A stretch of DNA of 64,000 nucleotides from Trichoplax adhaerens (GCF_000150275.1 NW_002060953.1:1973429-2037428), one strand, 5' to 3'; shown: positions 37,700-63,799, counted from the first letter of the stretch. Program-made: numbers and translations. The notes: generated by a model not told the origin, from the sequence alone.

Positions 37700-40239
37700 A
37701 CTTTAGCGTAACGCTTTCGTATACAGAAACGTCATTGCTTGTTTCTATTTACTTCCACAGTGACTTTAGCATAATCGTGAGACGTTATTTTAGCTATAAA
37801 TTTTAATGTAAATAGTTACGTGAGTAATAGTTGCTTTACTGTATGAAAATAAAACTAAAGACAATTGTGTTCTTAATGACTGGAAAATTTGGGAGTAAAC
37901 AACAATTGTGCGGTTGGTTTGTGATAATATCTAACTTGATGGATTTATTATTAGTCTTGATTCGTTTGTATAAAATGGTATACAAGATAACGCCTGAAAA
38001 TGTAAGCATTGCAAATGTAAAGGTAATCGCGTTCGTATCATGCAAAAATACTACTGGCGTAAAAGTCAGTAATTTCTAGTTTGAGTATTAAAGGCCATAA
38101 TTTGTAAAATAGTAGCTTAATCATGCAGAAGCGAATTTGAAGTTGATGATGGAATGGAATAGCATCATTGATATAACCGAGGCGGGTTCGATCAATAACT
38201 AATGTATTGGTATTTTTACTTGGGCATTCTACAACCTACTATTTGCGTACATATTTCGTGCTCAAGTTGTAATTGTTGGTCATTTATAAAGATGAGTGTA
38301 AAAAGATTGGTTCATTTTGTGATCATACCTAATTGCTTATTCAACGACTGATTGACAATATAAGTCAACGTTTGCCGGAGATACTACTAAAGCAAGTAGT
38401 TTATTGTCCGCATTTATTGAAGTTAGAATACTCCATTAACAAATAAAATGGCTTTGACCACGTTTATAATAAGATTGCATTCAAATATATTAGAAAATTC
38501 TTTGAAAATTAGGACAATGGTATACGAAATATGGATATACTAAAATTGAATTTGAGTGTACAATGCTTGCACTATGTCTGAAATCATGTTTCACTTTCAA
38601 GTAGCATTTTACTATTCTAGGATTTAATGTATCCGCATATCCATTATTTACAGTAAATAAGATTAGAGAATGCCTCCTGATAGTTTCAACGACAAATATC
38701 ATACGTCTTAAATTTTCTTTATTGGAGAAAACAAGGGAAGTAGAGTGTAGGGCAGTAACTACCCTTGCGTACTAAAATCGATAAAATGCTTAATATTTCC
38801 TATCTTTTCTGGAAGGAATAAAACTGAAGTCATGCTACAGATCATTTTCTTATGCCGATTAAGACATCGGCGTTATTGTATTACAATGATATATGACATT
38901 ACAGACTAGGAAAATGGCGTTAACTACGGAGTATCTTCGAATTTAATATACCGGTATACTTGAAATCGAACATGAAGGATTTTACAATAGAAAGTAACAT
39001 TGAGTTTAAAGATATTCGTACATATCAATGATAAATTAGTTATTTCCTTACTGAAGTTTATTGTCTCATTAGATGCTAAACTGCTCATCCATGCTGTAAG
39101 GGATAGTAAACTGCCTACGATTAGAGAACGATGTAATGATGGAAATCCAGTAACATGATTACAGTGGCTTTTTCGAACTTATTTCTATTTCTTCATTTAC
39201 CCTAAAATCCATATAGAACGCGATCATGTCATCAACTTTAATCCCCTATCTTCTACCGCAAACGCCGCGAACGCCCAATAGGTGTTGTAAACGATCGCAA
39301 TAGTACATAGGGTAGCGTTTGTTGTTTTGACTTTAGTACTTTCATAACCATATCAATCCTGTAATAATTAACAACTTAATTTAGCGGTCAAAGTTTAATT
39401 TGCCATACATCGTATTAAGCAAGCATCAGCACTTATTAACGCCTGTATAGTTAGAGTTCCAGAAAAATTCCTTCTTGCAATGAAGTTTCACGGAAATGCT
39501 GGGCTCCATTCCCTGGGAGTTTTACTGCACTTATTTAGTTTATTAATTGTTCGGATCAAACTGCATAACCAAGACCTTGCTCATGTCTTCAGAGTTTACT
39601 TATAGAGCCTTAACTCGATGAAATAGGACAAAAAAACTATCAGTCTAATCCCTCCCGCCCTACCTTTAATGCAGAGTGAGGGACTTTATAACTAGAATTC
39701 TTCTTCTAATAATAATATTAGTAGCATGACTAATCAAAATATAAACCTAATTAACATACAATCCTTCCCTATTTATGAGCATCCGATTATTAGACTACGG
39801 AAATGACTTTCCCAAGAATTTATCTTTTTTTCCCCTGCTATTTCATTTTACGTGGTGGATTTATCAAAGGTACTGTAATAAATATAATACAACGACAATT
39901 AATGGAAAAACCTCGAATGAAAATCCTCATACAATTTACTTGATTTCCAAACATTCTGGATGAGGATTGTTAGTATCAAGCTACAACAAGATTGCATCAA
40001 TCATAACTAATTGTCTTACTTAGAAGGATTTTAAAGAATGAATTGCCAACATGATTAAATTAGACTAGAATTTGGTATAACATGGACGAGTAATTGAAGT
40101 ATTTTTAAATGTGATATTGCAGTCTAAAGTTGAAGCTCAATATTTTATCTGGAATAAATCGATGTGCATTATATTATTATGATATTTCACAAATATAGCA
40201 TCATTTAAAAGGCATCAATCATAATCTGTTTATGGAAGA

Positions 40240-40595
40240 TGTCACACACCACTAGTGACAAAGTAGTCTACACACGCCAATCCTTGCGTAGAACGCCACT
40301 TACTAACTTAAAGAGGTGAGATTAGCTATATCACCAAATAATTCAGTTCCAACAACCGAATACTATGGTATAATTATAGCGTCACAGATGATGTAGACGA
40401 GATAGTCAGAGATTTACTATCATTTATTACTGAAGGAATCTTGGCACCCAAGATTATAGTCTTTACAATTAAATATCAATTGAAAAACTAGTTGACTATC
40501 TAACCGACTAACGAACTAAAATGGAATCTTCAGGCACCAGCCTTTTATAGTCTCGTCAGAAACTCCTAATTAGGACGAGCTTACGCATCGTAACA
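40240..40595 (-). mobile_element. Solo LTR, family B copy 1 (356 bp)
   Basis: TGTCAC...GTAACA termini; perfect 5-bp TSD GAAGA (40235-40239 / 40596-40600); TATAAAAGG followed by AATAAA on the minus strand; homologous to 61146-62097. Confidence 0.85.
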
Positions 40596-41235: not shown

Positions 41236-44200
41236 ATGGCAAAGCTGTATTTAATATTACTTATCTGTTCGATTTTTAATGGGACAAATCAAGGTTAGTA
41301 CCAATAGGTTCACTTCAAATCCATCCAATAATAATGTAATGATCTAAGACTACTAATTCAAGGCCATGAATTCAATCGAAGTTGTAAACAAGATCCACCA
41401 CGATACGATAATGTGAACATTTTTCTGTTTAAGTTAGTACACTGATTGCTTTTCAAGCAATCAGTGTACTAACTTAAACAGAAAAATTACAATATTGTAT
41501 TATTCTGTCTAGCCCAAGCTTTTCCCAAAAAAGTACTATGAAACTCGGTGAGATTTGATTTAAACCGAATAAAATCGGCTACATTCAGTAGAAAAAATTA
41601 CTATCAAATACCAGCAGTGGAACAAGAATTGTACAATTGATGGCTTTATAGTAGTTAAAAGTCTCTTGTTTTCGTTCAGCTAATATCTAAAATTTATGGC
41701 ACAAGATTTCTCTATTTAAAAAGACTCTTTTACTATAACGAAGAATTATCTCACTTATTTCAACATCAATTTGGTCCATACAATAACTATATTTCCAGTA
41801 CGTATTCATAAACACTACCTGAAACAATCTCCATTAAAAAGACCTAAAATGTCTATCGTTTTAGCTCAATTAATATCTAAAATTTATGGCACCGAGCTTC
41901 ATTACTTATAAAAATTCGTTTAGTATATCCAATATTCGTTTCTCTTTATTTCAAAGTCAATTTATTCCATTCAATAACTATATTTCCTCCACATAGTTGC
42001 ATATTCACCACCTGTAACGATTTCTGGAAAAAAAATCTAAAAAAATTTAGGCCAACTAATATCTAAAATTTATGATGTAGTGCTTCATTATTTATGAAGA
42101 TTCGGTTAGCATATCCGACAAATTACTCTCTTTATTTTAGCATCAATTCAGCCCATTCAGTAACTATACTCCCGACACATATTTGCGTGATCACTATTAG
42201 ACATGGTCTTTAATTTGCTAATTTGCTAATTTTCTATCGATCAATCATCAATGTTTTCATACTAATAATTAATTTAACACCAAAATCAATCTCTTATTAT
42301 TATCATTGTTGGCAATACTCGTGAATCTTTTCTAAAAATTAAAATGATATTAACACGATCTTGATTTTTTCCATACTTTACTACCGATGCATCTTCTCAG
42401 TGCTAGTACCAGTACTCGTCTAAATCAACTGAGATGGATAAATCATCTATCCTGATAAGATACTAGCATAAAAGTTAATACTTTCATGACTTTCTCATGT
42501 AGAAAGGAGAAACGAAAGAAGTATATAAGTTTATAAACTGTATGAGAAAAGACAATGTCATTGGTTTATCATTTGATTCATCCACAGCCACGTTATTGTT
42601 GCTACATTTATTGGCTAAAATACTTCGTAGCAGTGAAATAATTAGTATTACGCTTACAACACACTTTAAATTTTCTGAATAATACACTTTTATCAAAACA
42701 TAACCAATAATTTGTTTGAACTAGTTGCATTTACGTAGGTGTACTATTACTGATTCATCGTTTGATAGTTACTCAGGAAAAGTTAACATTGGTTATTTTC
42801 TGTTGCATGATTTCGTATCTTTTCATCAAAGCCACTAAAAGACTATTTAAAAATAACATGAGAAAATTTAAAATTTTTTGATGAGTAATGCGGGGAAATT
42901 AGTCATATGGAGGGAAAGAGCACTCCTATTCGCATATATATTAAATTAATTCTACGATGGTGTCAATGAGCTGGTATGCTGTGTATGCTTACCAGTGATA
43001 TATAACTACTCACGGAAATCCCAAATTTATAGAAATATAGAAGGGCACGCTACAGTACGTCATACTCACATAACTAATAGTCTACAATCCCAATACTTAC
43101 TATAGTTAGGTTACAGTACTACATGGTATTGGGCTAATATAATTAATATGGAAGCGTTAAACATGGCTTACACATAGGTTAATCCTGAAATTTATCGAGT
43201 AAATATGACTATCAAAAGAAAGATTTAGTTATCGCATTTAACCTAACAACGTTTATTCGTACTAATTCAATTACTTCTCTACTAAATTATCACAGTGCAC
43301 CGCAACTTTATATGCCTCACAGGGCTACTAATAGTATCAAACTAAAGTAATATCACTCTGAATTACTCTACATTAATCTAATCGCGAATTGCATAGATCT
43401 AGAAGGATTATAGCCTACGTTCCTAATATACTTTAACTTATCTAGCAACCGACCTTTTAGCTTGTCTTGCCTTCCTTTTGTAACCGCATTAGATGTAGTG
43501 CAATGAAGAATTTGAACAAACTAACATTTAAAAATTAGAATTTTGATGATATGAACAATTTTATATCATATTCTAAGACAAAATAACCGTAATTATTGAG
43601 GCTCGGTACAGTTAAAATCTCAACAGACTAACGTTCATAAATTAGAAATTAGATAAAGCACTCGATTTTATATTATATTTAAGACAAAATAGCAGTATCT
43701 ATGAATAGACTAACTTTCATACAGATAATATCTCTATAATATAAAGAATTAGTGGGAAATTCAATAGGAAGCCTTTATTGTTATGTTATTATTTCTTGAC
43801 TTAAATAACAATTAACCAACGTGTTTCGATTTCTTTCATTCCAGTTAAAAGTGGAAATGAGCCCGATGAGGAATGCAATGGTTTAGGTAGAGCATATACT
43901 CGTATATATTATATCCATATATATATATGTATCCGGTAACTCTTAATTTTTCATGCTATGGTAGATATAAAAATTATGTCCGTTACATGATATTGGCACG
44001 GAGAAATATTGCACGACAGCAAATCTAAAGCCTTGAAATAATTTCAAATCTTTTGGATTTCATTTCTAGCTTCTATACCTACAGTCTCCTCTCCAAATCT
44101 CACACAAGAATGCAGAGTGATAAAATTAAGCTGGAAACCTCCCACTATCAAGCCATCATGCTGGTCACAACTACATTACACTGTAGCTTACCGAACGTAT

Positions 44201-47200
44201 GTCGGAAATCCTAAGGAAACGAAACGCTTTAAAAATGCCTGCAACAATAGTACTGAGCCTTTTTGTAAATTGCCACCACTTGGTAAGTATGTAAGCGTTA
44301 TAGATTACCGGGTTATGACTTCAATGAAAAGCAACTCAGAATTAGTATCGCGCTCCAAAACTCGCCGCTTTTATCTTAACTTGCACGGTGAGTTTTCTAC
44401 ATTCAATTGTTTTCTAAAACGAGACTATTTTGATAGTAATAATCCTAATAGATAATCTAATTAATCCAATTTTGATTTTTAATTACATTACAGCATCTTA
44501 TCATCATCTGTTAAAATTACTCTCATGACAAGAGACTAAGATACCGTATACAAATTGCATTAGATAATTATATATTTGCGTAAGGCATTTACTTTATCCG
44601 TTTCGTTTTCTGAAGTAATCCATTCCTAACCAGCTTCTCATGCCTAGCTTACAAAAGTTTCGTAACTGTAGTTGAAAATTCCTAATTTGAAAAGCATAAC
44701 AAGATTTAGACCATAGCAAATACCCTGAGTGGCCTAGTTATATCGTTGATGTTTTTTTATAATATAATTTGTTGCACTTAATATAGAATATTAGTACTCT
44801 ATAATATATCATACATTAATTAAATTGGCAATAAAGTAATAATAAGATCTGGTTTAATATTATTAGATAGTAAAATACGACCATAGCATACGAGAATAGA
44901 ATAACGAATTTAACAGAATTAACTACGGTAATTGAATTTATCCGTCAAATTTTTTCCAATGCCGATTCCTCCTTACAAGGTTTTATACTGTTACTGTACA
45001 TCATAATACATTAAGAGCAAGTTCATAGTATCAATATGCAAAATGCCCTTGATTACGTTCCAAATATTTCAGTAATAATATAGCATGGCATCCTATAATA
45101 TAATTGAAGAACAGAAAAATTTAATAAAATTAATATACCCAGATTAGGCCAAATCCCAATGTTTGCGAATGCAAATTGTCTACCGAATAGACTAATTTTG
45201 CAACTAAAACTTCGTATGTCAATAAGAATAAAACGCAGTGTGAAGACATTTACTTCATGTACTTACTACTTCTGAGCTTAAGTAATATAAAATTGTTCGT
45301 GTTATTCTAGTACAATGATACTGAATTTAAAAACTATTTGATAATTAATTTGTTTAAATAGTAATGATATTACGACCTTATACCGCAATAGCTAACAAAT
45401 TATGTCAGAATAGAATCAAAACTGTCAGATTCTCAACGGCAATAACCCCTATCCTTGTAGATTATCGCACCTTACAATATCACGCCACACCGCTTCAATA
45501 ATATGCTAGAACTGAAAGACTACCATAAGACTGTGTCTGAAAATAAATTTTTAATTGATAACAATTCAATGAAGCAAAGTATTCTAGTTCTGATAATTCG
45601 AGATATATTACTTGAAAATGGCAAAAAATTAATTTAATCATTTTCCCCTTCCTATGCTAAAGTGGTTATTCCGCCAGATGAATGCGAATCTAATTACGGC
45701 AAAGGCAATAACCGTATTCTTGTAATCTGTAAAGAACATATCAAATGTGATTCTGGGCAGACCTACAGATATAATTTCTATTGGGGAAAAAATTATTCAA
45801 AGGATGAACCAGATACAGTTAGTAGCCTTTGATTTATTATTAAGTTTATGACAACCAATTTTACCGCACATTTCTGTCTATTTAATATCAACTAACAATG
45901 ATACTTTCTTCTTTAGTCATCTACTAATTATTTGAGGATGGAGCTTTCTGAGCTAGAGCCTGATACATTATATTATTGGTATGTGGAGGCTGTGGTGCCA
46001 GCCAGAAGTTTGGTCAGCAAACCTACACCCAAACTCTATTTCCGCACATTACCTTTGATTTTAACTACACATACAGAAACGATTGCGACTACACCTTCAA
46101 CTACTGCTACGATTGCAACTACGCCTACAATTGTAGTTTCGACCGCAACTCAGCCAGTAACTACATCTACAACTCTGCCTACAGCTTTGCCTACAACAGC
46201 TATTACTGTCTTCAAGAAATTAGGTATGCTTGTTAATAAATGTTCCTACATTGACACTTCCAAATAATAACATATTGGATAAGTACAAAATAATTCATGG
46301 TGCGGAGGATAAAATCGCAAGATATTAAAAAAAGCCTAATTGATAATTATGGCAGTATTTTTCAGATAATACAGTTTTGAATGCCGCTATATATTATAAT
46401 AAGCTAGCCTAATAGAACAAAATATGAGCTTGATAGACATTATAGCAGCACTTTTCAGTGAATATAAACTTAAAAAAAAGTAAGCACTACGATTTACTAT
46501 TTTAACAAAAACAAGATTTGAGTTTAATTGGCTTAAAGGCAGCATTTTTCAGTTTATGCAAACTTAAATAACACTAGATGTTACAATAAATTATTACAAT
46601 TTAATAATAAAATGAGCTTGATAGACGTTTATGGCTGCATTATTTACTTAATGTAAGTTTCATTTGAAGAACGCTAGATGTAGTAATACATTATCTTTAT
46701 AGAACGAAAAGTCAGCTTGACGAAGGTTTATGGCTACATTTTTTAGTATAGATTTAATTTTAACATAAGATATGTGTTTCAATCGTATAATGCGGTGAGT
46801 AGATTGGGAATTACAAAGTATTAGCCGATTGTCTGTAAAAAAATCATTACAAAAGTTTCTGAACAGCTACTTTGCACTCCAGATCCTTCAAGTCATGGTA
46901 TCTATGTTTTGCTAATTTTTAGAACCAACAATTACCGATATCAAGATTATTCTCTCCGCAAATCGAGTTAATATTACTTGGAAAGTTGTAGGACCCAGTA
47001 AAAAGTGTCAGAAACAAATTCGTTATCAATTAGTTTATTGGTGCAATCAGACCCGTAGCTGGAACACAGCCTGTAATAATTCAATAATAGCTGCCTGCCA
47101 GATTAACCTCGAAGATGGCATTTCTGAAAGTCTAACCTTTAAGATAGTACTCAAAGATGAAGCTCAAACTGTGATTAAAGAAAGTGACAGCTTTATCCAT

Positions 47201-48499
47201 CTTATAGGTAAACAAATACTGACGATTGCCTATTTTGGGAGAAGCTAGAATATTTCAAGCTTTGTTACTACGATAGATATTAACAGGGTTACAAAATATT
47301 TAAACCATCATGACAGCAAATTAGTCTCGATAATCGCATGTGCAAATTGAAATCGTTCGGTTACTTATCGCAACTTTTATTCGCAATGAGCTCAATTAAT
47401 CTATCAATTTTAATTTACTGTATACAACGTAAATTGGGAATACAATTTTTGATTCATACGCAAGTGCTATGATTATTAGTTGCATTTTCTATTGATTACC
47501 GATGATCCATGATCGAGGTTTAAATACCTATAGAATACATGCAATGAAACAATTTACTAGATCCAATTATATCGCGAGAATAACTCTTCAAATACTGTTA
47601 CAAAGAAATCAGAATGAAATTTTTAATTGAGTAAATCCTTAAACTTAAACTACTCATACATGAATATTAGCTATTGTAACAGGTGCGAAAGGATCTTGAT
47701 GAATCTGTAATGACTATGGATGTAAATCGATCGTAAATGAAACTAATAGGAAACAATTTAGAAATTATTTTGGAAACTTAATATCCCAATGGTAGCGAAG
47801 ATTTCATTAATAGCTCATACGTTATACTATAATTGATCCAATTAATCACTAATCACATCTGGTTGACGAGACTACTTATAGACAAAGATCGATGGGTATG
47901 ATAGCTAATGCTACATATCCTAATAAAGAAATAGTTTCAGTAGAAATGTATCTAAATATTTCGAAATTAAAAGTAAAAGCACCGATGTTGTTATTGTAGA
48001 AAATGATACTATAATACAATTTTGATCTAGTTTTATATTGATTCATAATATTTCAGATTTAGGCAAAGGAAATGTAGCTACTACTGGTAGAAATGAAATT
48101 ACGGATACACCTATAGAAATTACACCATCAAGCCTTACGAAAAGAACATCACAACTAAAGGCAGAAACTAGAGGTCCAACAACTAAGGATATAATAATAA
48201 GCGATTCGCCAGGAAATTCGAAAGAATCCGCCGCATTATCTGTGCTAATATTACTTAGCATCATCATTGCTTTGATTGCCGCTCCACTTATAATAGTTAG
48301 CGTTATTATCTTAATTATATTCTATAAGCGATATGTTACCCGAGTTTCAAATCCAAAATCTCAATCAGATGAACATTATTATTCGAGCGTAGAAAACGTG
48401 CAAAAGCCAGACTCAAATATTACTGTCCAAGAGGAGTGTACACTAACTGAGGAATCGGAGTATTCCGGCCAATTATTCGCAAATAGCGTTATCGTATAA
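41236..48499 (+). CDS. Single-pass type I membrane protein R1: signal peptide, FN3 pair (tissue factor/class II cytokine receptor-like), Thr-rich stalk, third FN3, TM, short Tyr-containing tail
   Basis: Exons 41236-41293 (MAKLYLILLICSIFNGTNQ), 43845-43886, 44070-44387 (LSWKPP...HYTVAY...CNNSTEPFCKL...YRV), 45663-45817, 45917-46223 (LSELEPDTLYYWYVEAV + T-rich), 46923-47207 (ITWKV...RYQLVY...WNTACNNSIIAACQI), 48057-48499 (TM ALSVLILLSIIIALIAAPLIIVSVIILIIFY, tail DEHYYSSV). All junctions are GT-AG and in frame (phases 1,1,1,0,1,1). Confidence 0.8.
41421..41485. repeat. Perfect inverted repeat: 31-bp arms, 3-nt loop
   Basis: TTTTCTGTTTAAGTTAGTACACTGATTGCTT-TTC-AAGCAATCAGTGTACTAACTTAAACAGAAAA in intron 1 of R1. 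Confidence 0.97.
41676..42190. repeat. Degenerate tandem repeat, ~190-bp unit x3 (intron 1 of R1)
   Basis: Anchor TAATATCTAAAATTTATG at ~41681, ~41871 and ~42057, each followed by ...CA(A/G)TAACTATA(T/C)T. Confidence 0.8.
46325..46750. repeat. Degenerate ~95-bp tandem repeat (R1 intron)
   Basis: Recurring AAAA..GAGCTTGATAGAC.TTAT.GC.GCA.TTTTCAGT-like motif near 46340, 46425, 46520, 46613 and 46712. Confidence 0.6.
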
Positions 48500-49004
48500 T
48501 GATTGATGTAAGGGAGTTAGACCAAATTATAGATATACTTCATAACTTTGTAGCTAAAATATTATAATAGTGAAGAGTATAACGTGCAGTTACAGAGCTA
48601 GAAAGGATTGAATTGACATCCACAATTTATAATATAATACGTTAGTCTTTTTATATCCGCTTTTGCAATGATTAAGGCAAACTTTGCAGGTATCAAAATT
48701 GTTTATTGCAATGCTGTACGAATACTTTTACAATAGTTGCTTAATAATGTCGGTAATACGCTTTTAATATGATTGGATTAAGGCTAATCTTATTTCCAGG
48801 AATGCTGAATGAAAATAAGAAAATTACAGTAGCCGATTAATTCTTTAAATGGACTAATTCTATCAGTGTTACCTAATTGATCTTGTTCAAGTAACTGGCA
48901 ATTTGTAGCATTAATGACAAATATTAATATCAGCTTCTTCAAATTTCAACTATAATATATGTTCACAACATCATTCTACATTAATACTATTTTATTTAAA
49001 CTAT

Positions 49005-49830
49005 GAATCATTTATTACTGGATAAATCTAATTAGAATTACTATTCTATTGGTTATAGTAATGAGAAATTTTAATCTTGAAAATACACATCCCTAACGCA
49101 ATATTATATTTCGATACGGTATTATCGGATGGCTAAATACTATTTCAGAAATGATGGAAGATCTACTTTACTTCAATTCGATGCAATTTGTAACATTTAT
49201 CAAAGTTAGCAAAGTACTAATACGAACTCAAGCAATCTTAATATAAATCATGCTATTTACTGCGTTTCAGGGATTTTTGTATCATATCGATTCAAAGAAA
49301 AATAAAACTTATTTGATATATTTAACTTCAAATTATATTAGTTGTTCTATTATATCTACATAGAAGGCATAAAGAAATACATTAATTTATCAATTTCCTA
49401 GTTATGGTGTGAAATAAATTGATTTGATAGCTGATTGTGATTGTGAATTTGTGCACTTAGATAGTTCAAATTCGAACTATAAAATTTCTAGCGCAATATT
49501 CTGCATTACTGTTATTTATTGAAACTGTAAAGTGTAAATTATTGGATAAATCTAATTAGACTTTACTATTCTGTTGGCTATAGTAAAGAGGAATTTTGAA
49601 AAAATATAGATGGTCTAATGGAATATTCAATTTCGACACGAAATTATTGGATGAATAAATTAAAAATAAGCAATGATGTAAGATCTATCTTAGTTCAATC
49701 CTATTTAATTTGCTATGCTTGTTAAAGTTAGTAAAGCACCAATCCGAACTAATAATTTTAATTTAAATAGCTTTATTTACAGCCAAACTTTAAGGATTTT
49801 AGATTCATATGTATCAGTAAAAATGAATTT
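49005..49830. repeat. Diverged direct duplication, period ~524 bp, between R1 and R2
   Basis: GGATAAATCTAATTAGA.TTACTATTCT.TTGG.TATAGTAA at 49020 and 49544, with further colinear anchors (TTCGA.ACG, AATGATG.AAGATCTA, AAAGTTAG.AAAG.AC). Confidence 0.8.
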
Positions 49831-52085
49831 ATATATATAAACACAGTGATAAAACTATTCTTTAACCATTAAACTGCTAATTGTAAAAATAGGTTAATTG
49901 TATCAACATATAAGGCAAGGAGAAACACTTTAAAGTAATGATTTTCTAGTTATGAAATGCAATAATTACCATTAGTAGGAGGTTCTAAGAACATACTAAT
50001 GACCGTTTCAATTTTGAAACAGACATATGGGTATGACATTGCCTACAATTAATTAAAGTAACTGGACATTAATGTATCTTGCTGTAGATTATTCTATTCC
50101 TCAAATACATTAACAAAGACGTTAACAAAGATGTTGTAAATATATTTAGCTCTAACATAGCACCAATAAACTTTAGCCGAACAAATTATTTAAACTTGTC
50201 GACGGCAATTTCATATTTGAATATTTTTACGCTTATGTTCTATTACATACAGCACCGTATCTGGCCTATGGATCAAACGTTGAATTTATGAAGAGCTAGT
50301 ACATTTTAATGGGCATGAATTCGGTTAATTTTACTTACAGCTCCAGGCTTAACTGTTAATAGAGCAATATTAAAGTTGTAAAAACCAATTTCTGGTAAGT
50401 GATTACGTCCACTGTCATTAGTACAGATGAATTAATAATAGTCACCGATTCACGATAGTATCGTATTTAGTATGGCTACTAATCCAGTGAGCGAAAAAGG
50501 TAACGACTATACTTTATAAGCAAGTTCAGCTAAATTAATATTAATTTATTGGTTACATTGTAATAGTTAAAACTTGACAAATTTTATCTTAAGCTCTGCT
50601 AAAAATGGAAAAAGAATTGAGCGAGTTTAATTTATTGACCTAACTTTGCTTGATCTTGTTGAAAGGATAACAGTAACAAAGTAAAGTTTTAAAAATACTT
50701 TGTAGAAGCCGTCTTTAAGATTCGACTGATTTTATGTCAGCCAGCTGCGTACCGAAAGATAATTAAACTATTTCCAGCGCATAATAAACGAAGAACAACG
50801 CCAGTATAAACATAATCCTAAAAATGGAAAAGCGTAGCTTTTAAAATAGTTTTTCATTTAAAATTGAGAACTGATTATATATTACCAATTTAGGGGCCAA
50901 AATGTAGCTTTTACGACATTTTATGGAAGTCTACACTTTATACAATAGCTTGAAAAATATATGGAATATAAGCATATGTTTTGTTATTATTTCCCCTACA
51001 GCTATATTTTTCAGAGCAATTTGCACCTGGATGTTAGTAAATGATATTCCAAAGAAAAAGAAAAATAGAGAATACTGGGTAGCTTAGCCAAATGAGCGAT
51101 GTTATTCAAATACGTTCCCTTCCCCTTCAAAGAAAATAAAATAATAAAATAAGCAGTCTCGTGAATTCAAACAAGGCAAGTAATGCAGTATTCAAACTAC
51201 GTGTCACAAAACAGCTTTGCAACAAGATAATGCAATATACGATCAATAAGTCAATTCCTTGAACTACGTATCAAGGAACGATATCTGCACTATCACAAAC
51301 ACTTTTGCTCTACTAGCAGACTACACAAAGACTTAAACGTCTCGTATTTTACGTTAAACACTAAGTTTGAGAATCTTCTTTATTCACGATATACTGCATT
51401 TATATACTACTCCTCATTAGTTCACGAGTCATAGTTAATACAATTAACATTAGAATCATTTACTGAATTAGATATTAATTTTAGCTACTGCTCCCTTAAT
51501 GCAGACAACAGTATTTACGAACATAGACATGTAATGACTAATACAGAATAGTCAGATTACGATATGTCCTATCACGGAACATTTCCATGATAACTTACAG
51601 TCTACCATAAGTAAATTACAATCATAATGATTCGAACTGTAAGTAGATGATTTGCATTCCCTATTATAACTATTAATTTCAGTATGTGTATAAGTGTCAC
51701 TGTCATAAAAAGTCAGTGCTATATTAAAACACAGTATATCCAAATTAGAAGTTAACTAAATAAGGATAGTCTAATAGAATTATCCTAACATAGATATTTC
51801 TACTGTAATACAGTATATAACACTGTAACACTACGCTATTCAGAAATAAGAAATTTTAATTCTTTTTATACTTCATGACGTAACTACAATAATAATGCCA
51901 CCTGCTGTATATTACAGTCATACTTAAATCATTTCAATAATAAATTACTTATAGATAAATTGTCAAATATTATTATCAATAATGAATGATACTTAAACTC
52001 ATCAGCTAGGGGCCGTCGAGTGTACTAGCTAAAAATTTAAAATGAAAAAGCCATTGCAGATCTACATAAAAAATCTATTCTCAAA

Positions 52086-55000
52086 ATGATTGCAAGAATT
52101 CATGTACTAGCCTTCTATCCTGTAATAATTGGCATTCATTTCGGTAATTTAATCGATTTAGTCAATCGTTCTTTTAATTTTATAATATAAATCTTAATAC
52201 ATGGTATTACCAAATGGAAAGTTATTTTTTTTCCGGGTAAAAAATACTTCACTTAGTGTTATCAATAGAGAGAATTTATATGGCGTTTAAATTTAATCAG
52301 ATATACGCATTCTTTTTATTGCCTTTTGTAGCTTAAAATTTAATTTTCTAGCTCTGTTGTCTCTGAAATTTACTTTGCGCAATATTCTACCATGACATTT
52401 TTAATAATATAGACGAAAATAGTGATTACCGCTGGTATTACCAATATGAAGCGTCATTATCATATAAAGAAATACTAATTACTTACATCAACTTCCAAAT
52501 GCTTCTAAAGTATTGAAATAGAATTATGTATAAGCATAGCAAGAGAAGCATGCTGTAATTTTCTATCGCCTCGTATGTTGTTACGGCTATTCCAATAAAG
52601 ATAGTAAACTTTTTTAGTCATATTTGCGATGTCTTCATAAGATCTGTTTATCCTTTTAGCTTATGGTTTGAATCAGCCTGTGCCTGATTGCAGTGACTTA
52701 GGTATCTACGCCATAGATTTGATATTTTTAACTTGTTAGATTGCAAGCCAAGATTATCGGTGAAATAATCGACATAAAATAGTTTAATAGAAAATACTTG
52801 ATATTAATAGATAATCTAATATAGAGATTATACTAGAAGTTTAATTTCAGTCAATGTTCTTCTAATTCAACGACTAGATCCGCTACCTTCGATGAACTCT
52901 GTAAGCTCAACGATAGTATGCAGAAATTTCAAAATTAGCTGGAATCCTATAGCTGTCCGATCGTCATGTTCATCCGTTATTCGATATCGAATTTCTTATA
53001 AAATCTATTCGTCCAATGGCGACTCAAACTGGCATTCTACCTGCAACGAAACCTCACAACTTTACTGTAATATAGAACTTGAAAAGGGACTTATTGGAGC
53101 TACGGTTGTTTACAAAGTTATAGCATTTACTCACTCCAATCCAAGGTTGCAATCAAGCAGTAAAGATAATAGAGATTGGCCTAATGTTTCTTGTAAGTAG
53201 AATTATAGTCTCTAAAAAGCGATCTTTTAGTCCAATCATGACTTGTGCATATTGGGTGATTCAGAATCAGAAGCATCATAAAATGTATTAATTCGTTACC
53301 AAAAATTGATAATATCTGGATTAAGATTAATTGGAGTACTTTCAGAGATAGATCTACCAGCAATGATCTATAAAAGTAACGTGATAGCAGAACAACATTT
53401 TTTATACAGAATACATCTACTGATAAATCAAGTTAAAAGTATGGTAATAGCCGACTAAGATGATTTTAAGAAAAAAAACTACTGAAAAACATGTGTAAAA
53501 TTAACATGATTATTTTAAGAGAATAATCCTACGTTAATGAAGTCTAAAAGTAGCATAATAGCAGAATAAAATTATTTGCAGCGAGTAGATCGACTGATAA
53601 TCAAGTATAAAAGTAGACCGATAGACGATTAAGATTACTTGCGTAGAATAGATCGACTGATAATCGAGTATAAAAGTAAAGTGTTGGCCGACTAAGATTA
53701 CTAGTTGAGAAGATCTACTGACAAACAAATAAAGAAATAGCGTTATAGCCCATTAAGATTATTCGCATAAAATAGATCTGCTAATAATCAAGTGTGAAAG
53801 TAGCATGATAGACCATTATGATTTACGATCAAAGAACGGATCTGTAACAGAAGGCTTGCGTGATCTAGCTGAACTAATAGTCCGTCGGGTATTTCGTCTC
53901 TGTAATGTAACTTAGTATTGTAATTGTAGACTGTTAGCCATGTTTAGTATAATGTACGGTAGATATTTATCCTAAGAGATATTTGGTAGCTATAACTATA
54001 GACTGCAGTGGTAGAGACTCTATGCTAGAGTACAGATGACTACTATATACAGTAAGCTGTTGAGTTACTAATATGGCTATAGGTAAAAATAGAACTGTAA
54101 ATCATATATTAGGATATGGTTAATTCATTGTACTTGGGCTGGTCTGAATAATGTCTACGTAAGTACTGTAGTTGTATCCATATTGGATTAATGATGGTCG
54201 CAGTAGAATAGTCTTTCTAAGAATAATTTAACTATGTGTAATATAAGGTAAAAGGCAACCATGCGGATAGTAGCTGCCAATGCTACGAAAAGTATAAAAG
54301 CATGCAACTTTAGATTATTCTGTTAGTTCGTTGTAGAAGTCTTTAGTAGCAGTATTCGGCTAGAGTAGAGCTGTGTGTGGTTAATCTTTGCATAAGATTC
54401 AAGAAAGCCCTTATTTTCTAAAATTTTGGAATCTCGTGATTGGTATATATCACAGTCTCCTACTAACTTAGAGACTAATGGTAATGGAGCTAACTTGCTT
54501 CTGTTATAAGAATTACTCCAGCTCCCTTAATTAAGTATTTCGAATGCTTTACTTTATTAATGCTACGAGCGCCGACAAAATACTGTCTAGTAATCTATTA
54601 AACGTGGAACTAAGCAGTTAAATAGCAACAGGTCTTTATATACTCTTGCTTTAGACCGGTAGTACATACCAGATAATTGTACCGACTATAATTATTATAT
54701 AAGATCATTATGAAAAAACAGGCAAATGTAGTTAAAATAATTTAGTACTGGAAAAACAAGGTAATTGCAAACATCACTAATAAATAAAAGTTAGTCATAA
54801 GCCAATTAAGGCCTTGAGGCTCTGGACGACAAAAGCATCCTGGCATTTACAGTGCCGAAAATAATCGACAATATTAAATTAACAATACCTATCTAATACT
54901 ACAGCATGTCAAGCAAATTGACGAAAAGACCACAATCTGTGTTCGGTTATATATTTCAATAGACAAAAATAACCTAAGTTACTTCTAAAAACTAATGCAA

Positions 55001-58000
55001 TGTAACCTATTAAGAACAGAACTGCTCAGTTGTTAATAAAGGCCGTTATATGGAGCATTGCACCTTCACAAGATCTTTTGACAATCAAGTGTAAAAGTAG
55101 TGTGCTAGCAATTTAGTATAGTCTCATCTTACCATATAACCTTAATTGGATCGAGATCTATTCTATGTAACTCCTGAAATTTGTTTATGTATTAACTCTC
55201 TACATTATTCTTGAAATAATATAAAAGTTAAGCCTCAACCACCTACGGATTGCGAAACATTGACAGATGATGAAAATCAACGCGTTACTTTAAAATGTCG
55301 CTATCATGAGGATTGCTACTTCGGCGAAAGCTACAAATATGATTTCTATTTGGGTGTAAGAGATTCATCTGAAAAGCCTAAAAAGGTAATTTATCCTTAT
55401 AATCGATAACTTGCTACATAATTTCAAAATTAAATAGGGTAAGGCTAATTAGTAGCGCAAGATGGATAAGCTAATAAACTGTTATTTTGAAATTAAGTTA
55501 CAGACACTTGAATAAATCTCTGTATAGAAAGTTCAGAATTCTTATTATTAGTATCTAAATTCAATCATCATCTAATTTACTCCTGCAGTTTACAGTAGAA
55601 GACTCAATTTCCAAAGTTCTGGACTATTCCTATTTTACAGTAAACGTAAACTACTACTGGTACGCTCTCAGTGTGGTTTCATTTACTGGTCAAAAAAGCG
55701 ATTTTACCGATCAAATTAATTTCACACTACCTAATTCCAAGCCAAAACCGCATTCAATTACTTCATTATCTACGGATCCTATAATAATGTCATCTATAAC
55801 GTCCTTCGTAACGAGTTCAACAATTGCTATCTTAACGCAAGCACTACTTATAACCAATTCAGTAAGCACAAGATCGACTTTAAATGTGCCTTCGGTCAGT
55901 TCTACATCTTTAAGACCCACTATATCTTCGTCGACATCGAGTGGCATATCTATAATACCGACTAAAACATTATCGTCGACGAGTAGACAACATTACCCGT
56001 CAACTGCAAAAGAACCTACAAAAAAGTCTACAAAATCTACGACTAATTCACCAGTAACTTTGTCACCATCATCCTCGGTTCCTAGATTTACGAATAATAC
56101 TCTATCACCTGATATCACATGCAAAAATCTAGGTAAACATATTTACAGATCTAGGCCAAATTAAAATTCTACATACTTTCTCTCTATATATTACGGCTAA
56201 TGTATACGTTATATACTTGCGAAGTTTTATAACAAATAAGCGCTATATTATTTCGATATGATGTCATTACGACAATTTTATCTAGCTTGCAAATAATATT
56301 TAGACAACTCTTCTATTCTCTACGAATTTATATTATAATCATATTATCTCCATAATATTTCAATCTAACATTTACTTGAGGCAATACCTGAAATAATCCG
56401 GTCAAAAATAGATATAGGCTAGATTAAATTACTAATCTAGTTGTACCATAAATTTATAGCGTATTATAGCCTGACTTAGATTAGTTAATCGATTAATTAT
56501 TAGAACTGTATCGTCAATAGTGCGAATAATTATCGGAGTACTGAAACAGTTTTATTTTCAAAATGGAACAGTATCATTAAATTAAGTAAAAAAAAGTACT
56601 AGAAGTTAATTATACCATGGTTTTGAAATAGTTTTAACTTAGCTATGATAATAATTAGTACTGTATCTTCAATAGTTCTAATCGTTATCGGAATGCCAAA
56701 AGTTTTATTTCCGATATTATTAAGTTAAATGTAAATTAAAGTATCGAAGGTTGACTATTTAGTTTATCATCTTCCCACATCTATTTGTAGTTCTTAGAAA
56801 CACGTTTAATTTATTTCAATATTTCAGCTAAATTTATTTCTTAGTATTAAAAATCTTTAGGAGTAATTAATTACCTTAGCAATATTGTATAATTCTATAG
56901 AGTAGTCTATTCAAATTCAGTAGAAGATATAATGGAAATACATTCATAAATTTATAAATAACAGTATCGATTAACTTTTGTACCTAGAGTGAGCTCTTTG
57001 ACATTATCTACTTTACTATAAGCTAATCACATATCTAGTAACCCTGCTAGAAGTAACTTCTCGGTCTTTTTAGGGTTCTTTGTTGTAAAAGACATCCAAT
57101 AAATACTCCGATTGTCAATATATCCGTACATAGCTAATAATGCTTCCTCTATGTTACATTTCTTATTGTTAATCACTTTGTTGTATAATCTTTCGTATCA
57201 GCTTTGAATCGATTCGCCTAATTTTCGCTTAATATTAGATTTAGATCACTTGCCAACTGTTCGTAATGTGAAGTTAGTAATGGAATGTGATACATGCAAG
57301 ATTAATTGGTATCCACCAAATATTAATTCCCGATGTCTGCCTTTCATTCAATACCAAGTTCATTATGATATTCTTCGGATATTTCCAAAAATATTAATCA
57401 ATGGAATACTGTTTGTGATTCTATAAATGATACAAGTTGTCAGTTTCCAATCAACAGTAGTACAGTAGGTTCTACTTTAATCTATGAAGTCATCACTATA
57501 TTTACATGGACAAATTCGAAGTCTAAATTACGTAGACAGACTTATCTGGACTTTCGCTGTAGGTTTTTAACGTGGAGTGGCTTTTATTTCTAGATTGATA
57601 TTATAATATTAACAATTTTAGAAGGGATTAATTAAATAATAAGGTATGATATTGTTGCATTTGATAATAATGGAAATTATGATTTAATTTGTATATTATA
57701 TTAGTTAAACCGGAAAAACCCAAGGATTGCTATAGCTGTATCGATTATCATCAAAGAAAGGTCGAATTAACTTGTTATCATTCTGAAAGGTGCCTAGCTG
57801 TAACTGCACATATATACAATTTCTATCTATTGCAACAAAACTCAATCTTTAAAGTTTTAGAGGTAAATAATAATACATGGTAACATCTTAGAGTTAATTT
57901 CTATTTCATGGAAAATTGAAGGATTTGCAATAGCTTAGAATAGTCCGGTAATAAAATAGAGAAGTATTTAATATTATAAGTAACACCTTTATGTGATAAT

Positions 58001-61000
58001 TTTAGCCATATTACATAAACTTAGAATGGTCCAGCATTAACATAGAGATGCATTCAACACTGTTAGTATTACATTTAGGTTGTGATTTTAGTTATATGCC
58101 ATAAAAAACAAAGATATAGGAGGTTATAGTTAGCACTAAAATTTGGCGATCTATCATTATTTTCAATCATAAAATTAGTAATTTCGAAATTAGGAAGGTT
58201 TATTATATGCATTAGAAGGACGTATATTTCAGTTAGATAAATTAAAACCAGCACAACAAGTAGAAGATTACTGTCTTAACGTATCCCTAAACTTAATCTT
58301 AATTTCTCTCTAAATCAAATCATCTAATCCTCTTTCATATACCTACGCTACTTAAATCATTATCAAATGAATATCTTTTAACCACAGAGGGTATCAACCT
58401 TGTAATATCGTTTTCACAGTAATTTTAGTCCACAGAGGAATCCAGTACTATAAAAGCTTTTTATTACAAGGTTCTAAAGAATAGTACAGCAATAATTAAT
58501 TACTCACAAGAATCTAGTCTAAAGTAATCTGAGCTCAATTAGATATCAAATCTTTTCTCCTCCTTTACGCTCAGATTTGTACACCTTATATACTTTTCTC
58601 TGAATCTATTTAAGGCAATAACATCGTCTACAATCAGACATGAATCATCACTACATTTTACAGTATTAATCAAACTGCTACAATATTATTACTTTACCAT
58701 TAATGTCCAACACCGTAAGGTATTGGGCATCTTTACAATCTTAGTATTTCAAGTCGTATAACGTCCTGTACCATAACTAGTTAACAGCTATATTAGTGAA
58801 TAACACCTTCTAATATAGTAGTTACCAGTCACCTAAATCTAGCAGCACAAGAATATCTATTTTTAGAAACTTAACTATTCTAAATATAGTACGCAACACA
58901 ATCAAATATAGCTATCGCTACAAGCAAATATAGGGTGCATCACTACAAACCTGCATACTGTACATACGAAATCAACTAAATGCTACTATTCAATATAAAT
59001 CATTGATTTTACCACATTATCTCGATATCATAGACTATTAACCTATCATAGCTCATCGCAATGCAGGCATTATTATAATCTATCAGAATTTATTAATAAC
59101 TTACATTCCCACATGTTTACCATTATTACCTATCAGAAGCGATCCCTATAATTGATTAATGTATCTAATAATAATTAATCGACAAGAATAAATTAATCCA
59201 AGTTGGAAGTTAAATTGCAGCACTACTGAGGTATTCTGAGCTTCAACGCTAGTAATCTTTGCTATTTCAGTCCTAATCTTTGTAGCACAGAATAGCTAGC
59301 CAATACTTAAAAAGATTTATGATTTTCGAGTAACACTTTACTCTTTCAGTATCGTATTTATCTTAGAAAAGCTACTAATGACTTCAATATCAAGCAGTTG
59401 CCAACTAAAATGCGTACAAATATATATATATTAACATATACATAAATAATTCTTATTTTTCGCTACCGAGTATTTTAATTTTATATTATAGATTAAATGT
59501 AAAATATTTAAACTTTACTGGATAATATTTACACAATTTGTTCATATTAGATCCCTCAAAGTGATGCTAGTACCTTGGCCATCGGATTTAATCATCTTAA
59601 ATATGATACTAATTACTATTGGTTTAGTAATGCTGTTAATAACTACAATATAAGCAGCGACAATTCGACCATGTCGCATTTTTCTATATTATCAACAAAA
59701 GCATACGCTAGCTCTGTTGGTACTCCATCTACTATTTGTGAATATCTAACTATCCAATCTGGAAGACCTGATAATCAATGTAATGATACAGGTTGGCATC
59801 CAATATTAGCTTTATTAAATAGATCATATACAGATTGAGTAAACGAAATATTACATCAGATAATGATTTCTTTTTACTAATTAATACTGTAATTTAATTC
59901 AACATTTTTCATGCAATCTTCTAGAAAGTAATCTACTTCTTTATTAACAGCTATCAGAGAATGACTACTGTAGCATAATGATACCATAAGAAATGATAAT
60001 CTCTGTTTTAAATCCGCTCATCAACTTTAAGTGTAGTAGCGTTATAATAATCAATCAAAGTTTACTATCGTAAAAGTTTAATCTTAAGATTATAAGTACA
60101 ATTAAAGGACTACTTTAATCAAATACTCATATCCGTCTACAATACATAGGATTTTCCGATCTTAGATAAAAACAATGTTCCCGTTTTACTTATTGTACAA
60201 GTTTAAATAAATCTTCATAAGCTATCTGAATAGAATAGTACCGTGCCATACTGACTTTGAATATAATATCACATCCAGTTCTTTTACTCATTAAAGTCTG
60301 ACTTATAACTATCTTCGAGTCAAGTTAACTATCGCACATTATATCATATACCATTACTAATTCCAAATTAGATTATGCATCTGATGTATTATATATATCC
60401 TTTCATTTGATATTTCATCCCTGAAAAGTATTAAATGTATCGTGTGTATCTTTAGGTGTTAATATTAGCAATGTTAGACTAGAAGCTACTTGGACGGCAG
60501 TCTATGTTAAGTGGGATACCGAAATTGCGAAAGCCGAAGAAAATTGTTCATTAAAAGTTTATTATCAACTGGAGTATGCTGTTGTCAGAAATGGAACCGA
60601 TACTGATAATTGGATGATAGCTTGCAAAAATATCACTTCCAAGGAATGCTTTTTCAAACGAGATTGTTCCACGCTAAATAAATCACTTATCTACAAAATA
60701 ACGGCTACAAATCACCATGGTCAAATCTTAACCGTTAGCAGTAATCAAACTTATTTTCCAGGTCAGTTTAAGCAATACAATGGATATAAAATTTTAAATA
60801 AAACGATTCATACGTACAACAATTCAAACTTTCATGAGCAGTTGTACAAATTGGTAACAGTGGTTTATTAACCATTATTGATTAACGGAAACGTGTCTTA
60901 TTAAAGCGTAAGATTTCACGCTATAAGTTATTAAGTCATTTTAGTATTTATATTAGTGACCAGTTTTAAATAAACTGATTCATACATTCTGTAATTCAGA

Positions 61001-63799
61001 TTTTGATATAAAGTTGGATTAATTGCTAATAGTAGGTTTGTCGACCATTAGTGAATAACCAAATAAGTCTTTTCGAAATAAATTGTTTTGTTGCGTGTAC
61101 TACTACGAGTCTTTTTAGGATTTTTGGTAGTGGTTATAGACTAACTGTTACACTCCTGTAATGTAACTTAGTATTGTGATTGTAGATTGCTAGCCATGTT
61201 TAGTATAATGTACGGTAGATATTATCCTAAGATATACAGTATTTGGTAGCTATAACTATAGACTGTAGTGGTAGAGACTCTATGCTAGAGTACAGATGAC
61301 TATATACAGTAAGTTGTTGAGTTACTGATAAGGTTATAGGTAAGAATAGAACTGTAAATCATATATTAGGATATGGTTAATTCATTGTACTTGGGCTGGT
61401 CTGAATAATGTCTACGTAAGTACTGTAGTTGTATCCATATTGGATTGATGATGGTCCGCAGTAGAATAGTCTTACTAAGAATAATTTAACTATGTGTAAT
61501 ATAAGGTAAAAGATTGCCATGCGGATTGTAGCTGCGAATGCTACGGAAAGTATAAAAGCATGCAACTTTAGATTATTCTGTTAGTACGTTCAAGAAGTCT
61601 TTAGAAGTAGTATTCGGCTAGAGTAGAGCTGTGTAGTTGATCTTTGTATATGATTCAAGAAAGCCCTTATTTTTCTAAAATTTTGGAATTTCGTGATTGG
61701 TATATATCACAACTCCACTAGTGACAAAGTTGTTTAAAAAAGCCAATCCTTGCAGAGAATGCCACTTACTAACTTAAAGAGGCGAAATTAGCTATATCAC
61801 CAAATAATTCAGTTCCAACGACCGAATACTATAGTATAATTATAGCGTTACTAATAGTGTAGACGAGGTGGTCAAAGATTTACTACTATTTATTACTAAA
61901 GAAATCTTGGCACCCACGATTATAGTCTTTACGATTCAATAGCAATTGATAAACTAGTTGACTATCTAGCCGACTAACTAACTAAAAAGGGATCTTCAGG
62001 CACCAGCCTTTTATAGTCTCGTCAGAATCTCCTGGTGTACATAAAGTAAAACTATCCTTCTAAACTTATAGTTAGGACGAGCTTACGCATCGTAACACTA
62101 ATATATAGACCGTTTTGGAGAAATATGAATAGGTAGAAACTATGGTACTAACAAATAGAGATACAATAGCTGTTGCAGATGAGATACGACTACAGAAAAA
62201 TATTGAAATTAATGATAACATATATCATAGCGGCTTAAGCAATATTCAAATCCTTATAAATAAAAGGAAGAGAAATTTAGGTATTATCAATTACAAAATA
62301 ATCTATATTGAAAAAGTGGCATGGAAGAAATGTAAATGCGGCTTTTATGAATACGTTACCATCACAACATCAAATAGTCCTAAGCGCTCAATTTGCGTAG
62401 AATCTTGAGATTAATTTAATATGCATAGCATCAACCTCCATGGAAATCCAGCATTATTAATAAACTAAGACTTTAGTATAACTTTTGTTTGTAATGAACT
62501 TCTTAGTGAATCCGAAATCTCCGGAACTCTGTAGCCTCAAAATGGTTGATAAGTATAAGAAGGAGAAATTGGTTCTGTCTTGTCCAGGAATGGCTAATGA
62601 TTGTGACTGGGTCAATATTAAAATCAAAATATGGCATCCGAATAGCACTAAAGTTAGTAACCATAATGAATATTTTTGGGTCCAAAAAATCGTGACCATT
62701 ACTGTACTATAACAAAAATAAACATAATTATCATCGTTTACAATTAGCGAAAGTTCGTTAGCCTATAAGGCAAGATGAAATGATGCTAGATGCCATTGTT
62801 TTTTATCGAAGGATCCAGATTTATATATCGTTACTCAGTACTCTTGAATAGTTGTCTAAATTCAAAGTAAAACTTATTAATATTTTAAATTAGGAGAGTT
62901 TTCGTGCAATATGCGGTAGTCGAACTAACAAGAAATTTAAATTCATACTTTATTACTTTGGAGGCACTTTATTTTATGAATATTCGATCGCTTTATTGTA
63001 GGCTAAGGTATTCTCATATAGCTACACACGCTATCGATCTATCGTAATTATGTCTCAAGATCAAATCCATAAACTTGCAAGGATTATAACATACTTTTGG
63101 CAAGCAAAAGTCGAAAATTTAGCTGGCCTAGAAAGCTCTTACACTACAATACGAAGCTTCAAGCCAGATTTCAGTAAATAAATTTAATTTTTAATATTAT
63201 ATCAATCGCTGTTTTATATGCTATGTAATTGAAGTATTCAAATTATTGGAATGCTGCTAAAATTTATCTTTTATTAAAATAATTTCCTTTACAATTATTA
63301 ACTTTCATTAAGTTGATGGGAGATTGTATTTACCATTTACATGTACCTTACTATAATTTTATGCGCAATCTGAAATTTTCTATGCTAACTGCAAGATCCT
63401 ATACCGTTTATTTTTACCATGATATTAATCGCCTTTTAATATCGTTGCTACGGTAGAAAATAATTACTTCCTTGTAAATTTCATTTCTTGAAAAAACTAA
63501 TCAAATTTATTGAATTCACAGATCCTTCACATACCATAAATACTATAGTCGTCGTTATAGGGACTGTCTTTGGCATTATATTTTTACTTGGTATTTCATG
63601 CATTCTACGCTTTCGCAAACATAGAAAATTAAGTGAGAATAATGTGCATGAATCACATCGTTCTGAATCGCACTATGATGAAATTTCGGTAGCAGAATCA
63701 ATAAATCTCAAAACTCTAAGGTCAGAAAGTCGAATCAGAAATCCAAATGCTTCACCCCACGATATTACATCCGAAATAGGACGCTATTTACAAGGATAG
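52086..63799 (+). CDS. Single-pass type I membrane protein R2, paralog of R1: signal peptide, three FN3 pairs, Ser/Thr mucin stalk after pair 1, TM, tail with HYDEI; frameshift in exon 6 as assembled
   Basis: Exons 52086-52143, 52660-52701, 52878-53192 (ISWNP...RYRISY...WHSTCNETSQLYCNI), 55228-55385, 55589-56132 (NYYWYA + S/T-rich), 57245-57558 (INWYPP...QYQVHY / WNTVCDSINDTSCQF, frameshifted), 57705-57862, 59551-59791 (HLKYDTNYYWF), 60456-60761 (DNWMIACKNITSKECFF), 62507-62652, 63002-63173 (TYFWQAKV), 63522-63799 (TM IVVVIGTVFGIIFLLGISCIL followed by RFRKHRK). The first five exons mirror R1 in size and phase. Confidence 0.78.
53345..53830. repeat. Degenerate ~64-bp minisatellite (R2 intron 3)
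   Basis: Recurring TAGATC.ACTGATAATC.AGT.TAAAAGTA......GAC.AAGATTA; cleanest copies at ~53585 and ~53649. Confidence 0.75.
53901..54454 (+). mobile_element. Solo LTR, family A copy 2 (554 bp), R2 intron 3
   Basis: TGTAATG...TATCACA termini; TSD GTCTC (53896-53900 / 54455-54459). Confidence 0.9.
61146..62097 (-). mobile_element. Solo LTR, family B copy 2, interrupted by family A copy 3
   Basis: Starts TGTTACACTCC (61146-61156), resumes ACTAGTGACAAAG at 61717 and ends CATCGTAACA at 62097. Flanks CTAAC / CTAAT (TSD with one mismatch). Carries ~38 bp absent from copy 1. Confidence 0.85.
61157..61711 (+). mobile_element. Solo LTR, family A copy 3 (555 bp), nested in LTR family B, R2 intron 9
   Basis: TGTAATG...TATCACA termini; TSD ACTCC (61152-61156 / 61712-61716). 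Confidence 0.9.

Follow-up and report, generated by a model that had tools for sequence, protein, structure and literature searches.

The class II cytokine receptors (tissue factor, IFNGR1/2, IFNAR1/2, IL-10R, IL-20R, IL-22R and IFNLR1) are type I membrane proteins with a pair of fibronectin type III (FN3) domains, D1 and D2 (Tissue_fac and Interfer-bind in Pfam), of which the second has two paired cysteines, one on strand F and one on strand G, and they are regarded as a chordate invention. The class I module (gp130, Domeless, EPOR, GHR, IL-6R alpha) is a two-FN3 elbow with four D1 cysteines that include a pair on strands C' and E, and generic tandem FN3 proteins (NCAM, RPTP delta/LAR, Robo, titin) lack a disulfide-rich D1. 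The published intron phases of class II receptor genes are 1-2-1-0-1-0 (PMC8863823). Recent work has traced interferon and its receptors back no further than lancelets and lampreys, i.e. to basal chordates, and a 2026 screen recovered interferon-like ligands or folds in lancelets and vertebrates only (bioRxiv 10.64898/2026.05.30.728932). Here we analyse a 64,000-nucleotide stretch of DNA from Trichoplax adhaerens (GCF_000150275.1 NW_002060953.1:1973429-2037428; "the window", within which all positions below are counted), which is AT-rich and eukaryotic and which a preliminary description had rightly assigned to an early-branching animal. Exact protein matches also give T. adhaerens as the organism. 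The window contains two adjacent paralogous genes, A and B, both on the plus strand, that are predicted to encode single-pass type I membrane glycoproteins. We hold with moderate confidence that they belong to a cytokine-receptor-like family restricted to placozoans, in which class II membership is unproven and gene B is broken.

The ectodomains encoded by both genes would be built from a repeated unit, consisting of a short C-x-x-L lead-in, a D1 encoded by one exon, a D2 encoded by two, and a stalk rich in Ser, Thr and Pro. Gene A (41236-48499; seven coding exons) contains one full D1-D2 unit, beginning with D1a, and a lone D1 (D1b), and gene B (about 52086-63799) contains three D1-D2 units, beginning with D1c, D1d and D1e. 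This repetition of units is reminiscent of IFNAR1, and the D1-D2 FN3 pair in a type I membrane protein is common to this family and the class II receptors. D1 appears to be marked by a Trp on strand B, a Y-x3-Y motif on strand C and a C-x7-C motif on strands C' and E, the first and last of which are also features of class II receptors. The preliminary description had recognized five D1 copies in two paralogous type I membrane genes, and all five of its motif strings were located on the plus strand, at 44228, 47060, 53030, 57402 and 60611. The composite motif W..Y-x3-Y..[WF]-x3-C-x7-C occurs four times in the window versus never in 100 shuffles, the fifth copy being broken by a frameshift in D1d. 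The C-x7-C is invariant in all 22 D1 sequences aligned; its spacing of seven is that of class II and not of class I receptors, and the first cysteine pair of D1 is likewise spaced C-x6-W-x8-C, unlike the C-x9/10-C-x-W of class I.

The best, and usually the sole, Pfam match of D1 is Tissue_fac (PF01108), which matches seven of 12 D1 domains, whereas the generic fn3 profile (PF00041) matches one (E 0.013). The gathering score of Tissue_fac is 27 bits and is exceeded by two paralogues of the genes in the window (TRIADDRAFT_59606, 30.2 bits, and an exon of TRIADDRAFT_60477, 27.9 bits). Within the window D1c scores 23.6, D1e 19.7 and D1a 17.6 bits, and D1b has no match to it; instead its sole Pfam match is IL6Ra-bind, a point of likeness to class I receptors. 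When the whole genome was scanned with Tissue_fac in six frames, D1 exons of this family ranked first and second, D1c being the second. A D1 profile searched against PDB sequences gave single-domain matches to IFNGR2 (E 0.002), IFNAR2, IL-22R1, tissue factor, IFNAR1, IL-10R2 and IL-22RA2, along with two class I receptors, and the hidden Markov model alignments placed the C-x7-C of D1 onto the C-x7-C of IFNGR2 and IL-22R1. Among the FN3 chains in PDB, class II receptors are a very small minority. An AlphaFold2 (AF2) model of D1c, with a predicted local distance difference test score (pLDDT) of 90.8, places C50 on strand C' (residues 47-53) and C58 on strand E (57-61), and the pair would bridge the two strands as in class II receptors. 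The profile evidence thus supports a specific leaning of D1 to the class II receptor D1, of which it may be a divergent relative or at least the closest look-alike, and a kinship with class II cytokine receptors is suggested.

A number of observations, given in this and the next two paragraphs, weigh against this reading. Those concerning D1 and the wider family favour a different explanation, namely that these are lineage-specific FN3 adhesion or recognition proteins, in which the C-x7-C and the weak Tissue_fac scores reflect convergence on a fast-evolving FN3 scaffold. All four testable D1 domains of the window lie below the Tissue_fac gathering score. A plain FN3 control from the same genome, which reaches 58.9 bits with fn3, scores 23.6 bits with Tissue_fac, and a 23-bit Tissue_fac score is therefore nonspecific when taken alone; what appears specific to D1, judging from the profile scores, is a Tissue_fac match without an fn3 match. 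This control is the third-best genomic Tissue_fac match, a domain of a multi-exon Ig-FN3 adhesion-type gene (C1414:1399965-1400168; L017:3289-3714, minus strand). Enlarging the D1 profile to 22 sequences made the E-values against PDB no better, and D1 taken alone as a fold (Foldseek, VIA) is an FN3 domain that matches cytokine receptors and adhesion FN3 domains equally well. The mucin-like stalks that follow the units, a difference from class II receptors, are, together with the repetition of units, typical of adhesion and recognition molecules, and a search of 1.84 billion representative proteins recovered relatives only as Trichoplax proteins and short fragments, i.e. none beyond placozoan-type sequences. 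Convergence does not readily account, however, for the failure of fn3 on 11 of the 12 D1 domains against seven matches for Tissue_fac, for the two paralogues above threshold, for the seven class II receptors among the weak PDB matches with the cysteine pair aligned exactly, or for the 1-0-1 introns around and inside D2 that are in keeping with the class II rule (PMC8863823), and we consider it rather unlikely.

The second domain contributes much of the remaining doubt. Interfer-bind (PF09294) found no D2 in five family proteins or in exons genome-wide, fn3 found none in the family, and profiles of the D2 half-domains searched against PDB returned one meaningless match (IFNAR1, E 7.7) and otherwise none. 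The D2 of gene A (in TRIADDRAFT_59604) is a generic FN3 domain by language-model features and predicted structure, and this generic appearance also favours convergence. D2 has three cysteines in its N-terminal half, and in the alignment strand F reads Y-Y-W and the second half is without cysteine, unlike the F-G pair of class II receptors; unlike class I receptors, the aligned D2 second halves contain no WSXWS motif. D2 is thus an unclassifiable, divergent FN3 domain with a cysteine pattern of its own, and the failure of fn3 on both D1 and D2 in turn sets the family apart from generic FN3 proteins. The claim of class II-like modules in the preliminary description was supported for D1 as a leaning, seen in its Tissue_fac matches and aligned C-x7-C, and was not supported for D2; the window's own D1 copies stay below the threshold. 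The fold of the tandem was tested on an intact paralogue, TRIADDRAFT_60478, with D2 exon fragments excluded from the folding alignment after they had aligned wrongly to D1; it stands for the paralogue and not for the spliced products of the window, a further point on the negative side. The AF2 model is a pair of beta-sandwiches with a pLDDT of about 85-94 in D1 and 60-84 in D2. Every one of the ten predicted structures closest to the paralogue in the ESM Atlas is a cytokine receptor, with class I and class II both represented, and the top feature matches there are IFNGR1 fragments. In Foldseek, IFNGR1 fills the top five places (1.1e-7) and IFNAR2 follows, with Pikachurin, titin and NCAM close behind at E-values within a factor of a few. 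Structural comparison, which the preliminary description had proposed as a check on class II affinity, therefore ranked a class II receptor first for the paralogue but placed the class II receptors level with the tandems of NCAM, PTPRD and titin, as convergence would also have it. The modelled tandem leans to class II receptors without discriminating them.

The cytoplasmic tails bear on the strongest version of the class II hypothesis, in which these would be true class II receptors with helical cytokine ligands, signalling to STAT. Besides the D1 profile evidence, the two paralogues over threshold and the receptors that head the Atlas and Foldseek lists, this version can draw on STAT-like exons in the genome: STAT_alpha is above its Pfam threshold at two loci (C1414:9845024-9845248 and C1413:8995512-8995727), although STAT_bind matched no exon in the genome. 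The search for JAK/STAT components that had been suggested for this genome was otherwise negative, in that the JAK domain FERM_F1 (PF18379) gave no genome match in an exon-wise search of low power in which controls were also silent. The short tails have no proline Box1 motif common to the family, a further difference from class II receptors. What the tails of genes A and B and of two paralogues do have, at varying tail length, is a Y-x-x-I/V motif after acidic residues. In the mechanism that we envisage, the D1-D2 elbow would bind a secreted or cell-surface ligand, and clustering would expose the conserved tail tyrosine to SH2-type or endocytic machinery and not to JAK; the signalling role is one that we purely infer, and this too counts on the negative side. 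The absence of Interfer-bind similarity in D2 and its Trp in place of the F-strand cysteine, the lack of a phase-2 intron in D1, the undetected JAK and Box1, ectodomains of several units with mucin stalks unlike most class II receptors, and the recovery of interferon-like ligands from lancelets and vertebrates only in published screens (bioRxiv 10.64898/2026.05.30.728932) together make true class II receptors very improbable. A looser relationship is that the D1-D2 unit and the class II (perhaps also the class I) cytokine-binding module share an ancestor, so that the module would predate Bilateria, would already have been present in the common ancestor of placozoans and bilaterians, and would have operated without JAK through tyrosine-motif signalling; we offer this as a tentative idea. 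If it were true, the receptor type would be an old one, of which tissue factor and the vertebrate interferon and IL-10 receptors would be late remnants. A placozoan family with a class II-type D1 would offer a concrete case in which to test where the module arose before Bilateria, and could show the function of such receptors at a time when there was no JAK. Should the likeness prove convergent, the family is still a sizeable, clustered group of surface receptors that diverge fast, in an animal about whose cell-cell recognition and immunity little is known.

The gene structures were modelled from the plus-strand translation of the 41-64 kb region together with GT..AG splice sites and intron phases. 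The exons are as follows, gene A first:

41236..41293 (+): exon 1, start codon and signal peptide, phase-1 donor; same as the N-terminus of TRIADDRAFT_59604
43845..43886 (+): exon 2, mini-exon with C-N-G-L at its end; in the TRIADDRAFT_59604 model
44070..44387 (+): D1a, single exon, motif at 44228; Tissue_fac 17.6 bits, sole Pfam match
45663..45817 (+): D2 first half, P-P-x-x-C ... C-x5-C ... Y-x-F-Y, phase-0 donor; from splice sites and alignment
45917..46223 (+): D2 second half (YYW strand F) and Thr/Pro/Ser-rich stalk, phase-1 donor
46923..47207 (+): D1b, single exon, motif at 47060, no D2 after it; IL6Ra-bind 17.3 bits, sole Pfam match
48057..48499 (+): last exon, stalk, transmembrane helix, 58-amino-acid tail with Y-x-x-V motifs, stop

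and for gene B:

52086..52143 (+): candidate exon 1, Met and a hydrophobic stretch of 19 amino acids, phase-1 donor; weakly supported
52660..52701 (+): mini-exon with C-S-D-L at its end
52878..53192 (+): D1c, single exon, motif at 53030; Tissue_fac 23.6 bits, E 4.9e-5
55228..55385 (+): unit 1, D2 first half, phase-0 donor
55589..56132 (+): unit 1, D2 second half and long Ser/Thr/Pro stalk, C-K-N-L at its end
57245..57558 (+): D1d, motif at 57402, one-nucleotide deletion near 57369; donor 57558 confirmed by RNA
57705..57862 (+): unit 2, D2 first half; both junctions in RNA contigs of two runs
59551..59791 (+): unit 2, D2 second half, Q-C-N-D-T at its end; both junctions in an RNA contig
60456..60761 (+): D1e, motif at 60611; acceptor confirmed by RNA, donor not; Tissue_fac 19.7 bits, sole Pfam match
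62507..62656 (+): unit 3, D2 first half; donor 62652 (phase 0) or 62656 (phase 1)
63060..63173 (+): unit 3, D2 second half (YFW); boundaries uncertain, sole acceptor found is phase-1
63522..63799 (+): last exon, transmembrane helix, tail with Y-D-E-I, stop

Each of the five D1 domains is a single exon with a phase-1 intron on either side, which bears out the earlier remark that the phase-2 intron is missing from D1. As had also been noted, D2 follows four of the five, D1b being joined directly to the transmembrane exon. The phase-0 intron that splits D2 between phase-1 introns was found in three of the four D1-D2 units and is ambiguous in the remaining one, unit 3 of gene B, where a phase-1 pairing alone was found for the D2 exons. 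The phases of the family, namely 1, none in D1, 1, 0 and 1, correspond to those of class II receptors in the phase-1 intron between D1 and D2, in a presumably equivalent phase-0 intron inside D2 and in the phase-1 intron after it, and differ in D1. Phase-1 flanks are common among shuffled extracellular modules. The intron pattern is compatible with the class II rule, bar the missing phase-2 intron, but nonspecific. Many D1 exons seem to end in Cys, but this comes from translating past the exon end into a T/GT donor (the slash marks the exon end), and the true junction codon is mostly Phe.

Both genes end in an exon for the transmembrane helix and tail (48057-48499 in A, 63522-63799 in B). The signal peptide is clear in gene A and a candidate in gene B, for which 52086-52143 is the only hydrophobic open reading frame in the intergenic stretch that both starts with ATG and has a phase-1 donor. 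A and B might alternatively be one gene with alternative transmembrane exons, but a candidate signal exon for gene B does exist, and we think the single-gene view less likely than two separate paralogues. The expectation that annotation would miss the architecture proved right for gene B, of which just a 149-amino-acid fragment (TRIADDRAFT_59605) is annotated; gene A is annotated, as the uncharacterized TRIADDRAFT_59604. Its database model uses an internal donor that drops the last third of D1a, a part that is conserved in the paralogues, and is probably mis-annotated at this donor, judging from the alignment. The same internal GT donor (window 44279-44387) is used in the Trichoplax sp. H2 copy, and the 36 codons omitted from the gene A models align with D1 strands F-G in all paralogues.

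Each unit has eight conserved cysteines, of which the lead-in (C-x-x-L) contributes one, D1 four and the first half of D2 the other three. Relative to class II receptors the family thus has two further conserved cysteines in D1 and one in the lead-in, and an interdomain D1-D2 disulfide is conceivable from this pattern. A conserved Cys (C-x-x-L/T) ends the exon before each D1 that has a D2, and D1b is without it. The sites on the plus strand are:

43883-43886 (+): lead-in Cys site
52698-52701 (+): lead-in Cys site
56129-56132 (+): lead-in Cys site
59776-59791 (+): lead-in Cys site

The junction reads TTA G/GT in three of these and ACA G/GT before D1e. This pattern indicates that the unit of duplication runs from a D1 exon to the next lead-in, and, as all unit boundaries are phase 1, units could be duplicated or skipped in frame.

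Transcription of gene B is documented by a spliced contig of 1134 nucleotides from a public run, which joins 57259-57558, 57705-57862, 59551-59791 and 60456-60890 across GT..AG introns. Since this one RNA contig links D1d, both halves of the following D2 and D1e at exactly the predicted junctions, these exons are co-transcribed, as the preliminary description had presumed. Three gene B junctions of the intron pattern above are confirmed in this way, one of them in a second run as well. The same data cover a defect in D1d that the preliminary description had overlooked. In the window and in the haplotig C729 alike, the match of D1d to the family is divided between two frames, and relative to all paralogues D1d has a one-nucleotide deletion near 57369, which leads the upstream frame into a stop at 57424-57426. 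Over D1d the RNA contig runs without a break, with no insertion or deletion against the window. The deletion is not an assembly error, because both haplotigs have it, as does the spliced RNA contig, which differs from the window elsewhere. With the resulting stop, no full-length receptor can come from gene B in this genome, and as read from its sequence gene B is either a transcribed pseudogene or the source of a putative truncated secreted product. Separately, the RNA contig reads past the predicted D1e donor into the intron (60761-60890), and the run with this read-through has a G>A change at 60761, the last base of the exon; retention of the intron or, in that allele, a weaker donor could be the reason.

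The D1 profile, searched over a genome assembly of 105.6 Mb in 1414 contigs, recovered two clusters that together contain at least 13 exons for D1, along with a haplotig copy, consistent with the suspicion of a larger family:

window (+): five D1 exons
just downstream of the window: two D1 exons (TRIADDRAFT_59606)
contig C1400: six D1 exons (TRIADDRAFT_60476-60478)
haplotig: one copy

The short fragments in the representative-protein search bear the same D1 signature, and our guess is that they come from other placozoans. We conclude that this is a real, clustered and lineage-restricted family of single-pass type I membrane receptors, so far consisting of placozoan-type sequences only; the literature searched contained no report of such receptors in placozoans. 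The large hits in the representative-protein search were rejected as relatives, as they were multi-FN3 proteins whose scores were sums of many weak matches; ten of them, examined whole, looked bacterial. A homologue search with the gene A protein returned that protein alone, its candidates being swamped by mucin-like words.

Elsewhere, the introns of gene B and other parts of the window contain interspersed repeats, the copies of which are 88-93% identical:

61156-61711, 53900-54454 and 15474-16030: interspersed repeat copies
61698-62033 and 40233-40567: interspersed repeat copies
58400-58950: interspersed repeat copy

The repeats reach RNA-type contig depths of hundreds to thousands, against 4-7 for the exons of the gene. 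A run of N at about 8400-8640 is an assembly gap. On the minus strand, open segments at 22479-23815 carry the AMP-binding signature S-S-G-T-T-G-x-x-K-G and probably belong, as exons, to a gene of the acyl-CoA synthetase or luciferase type.

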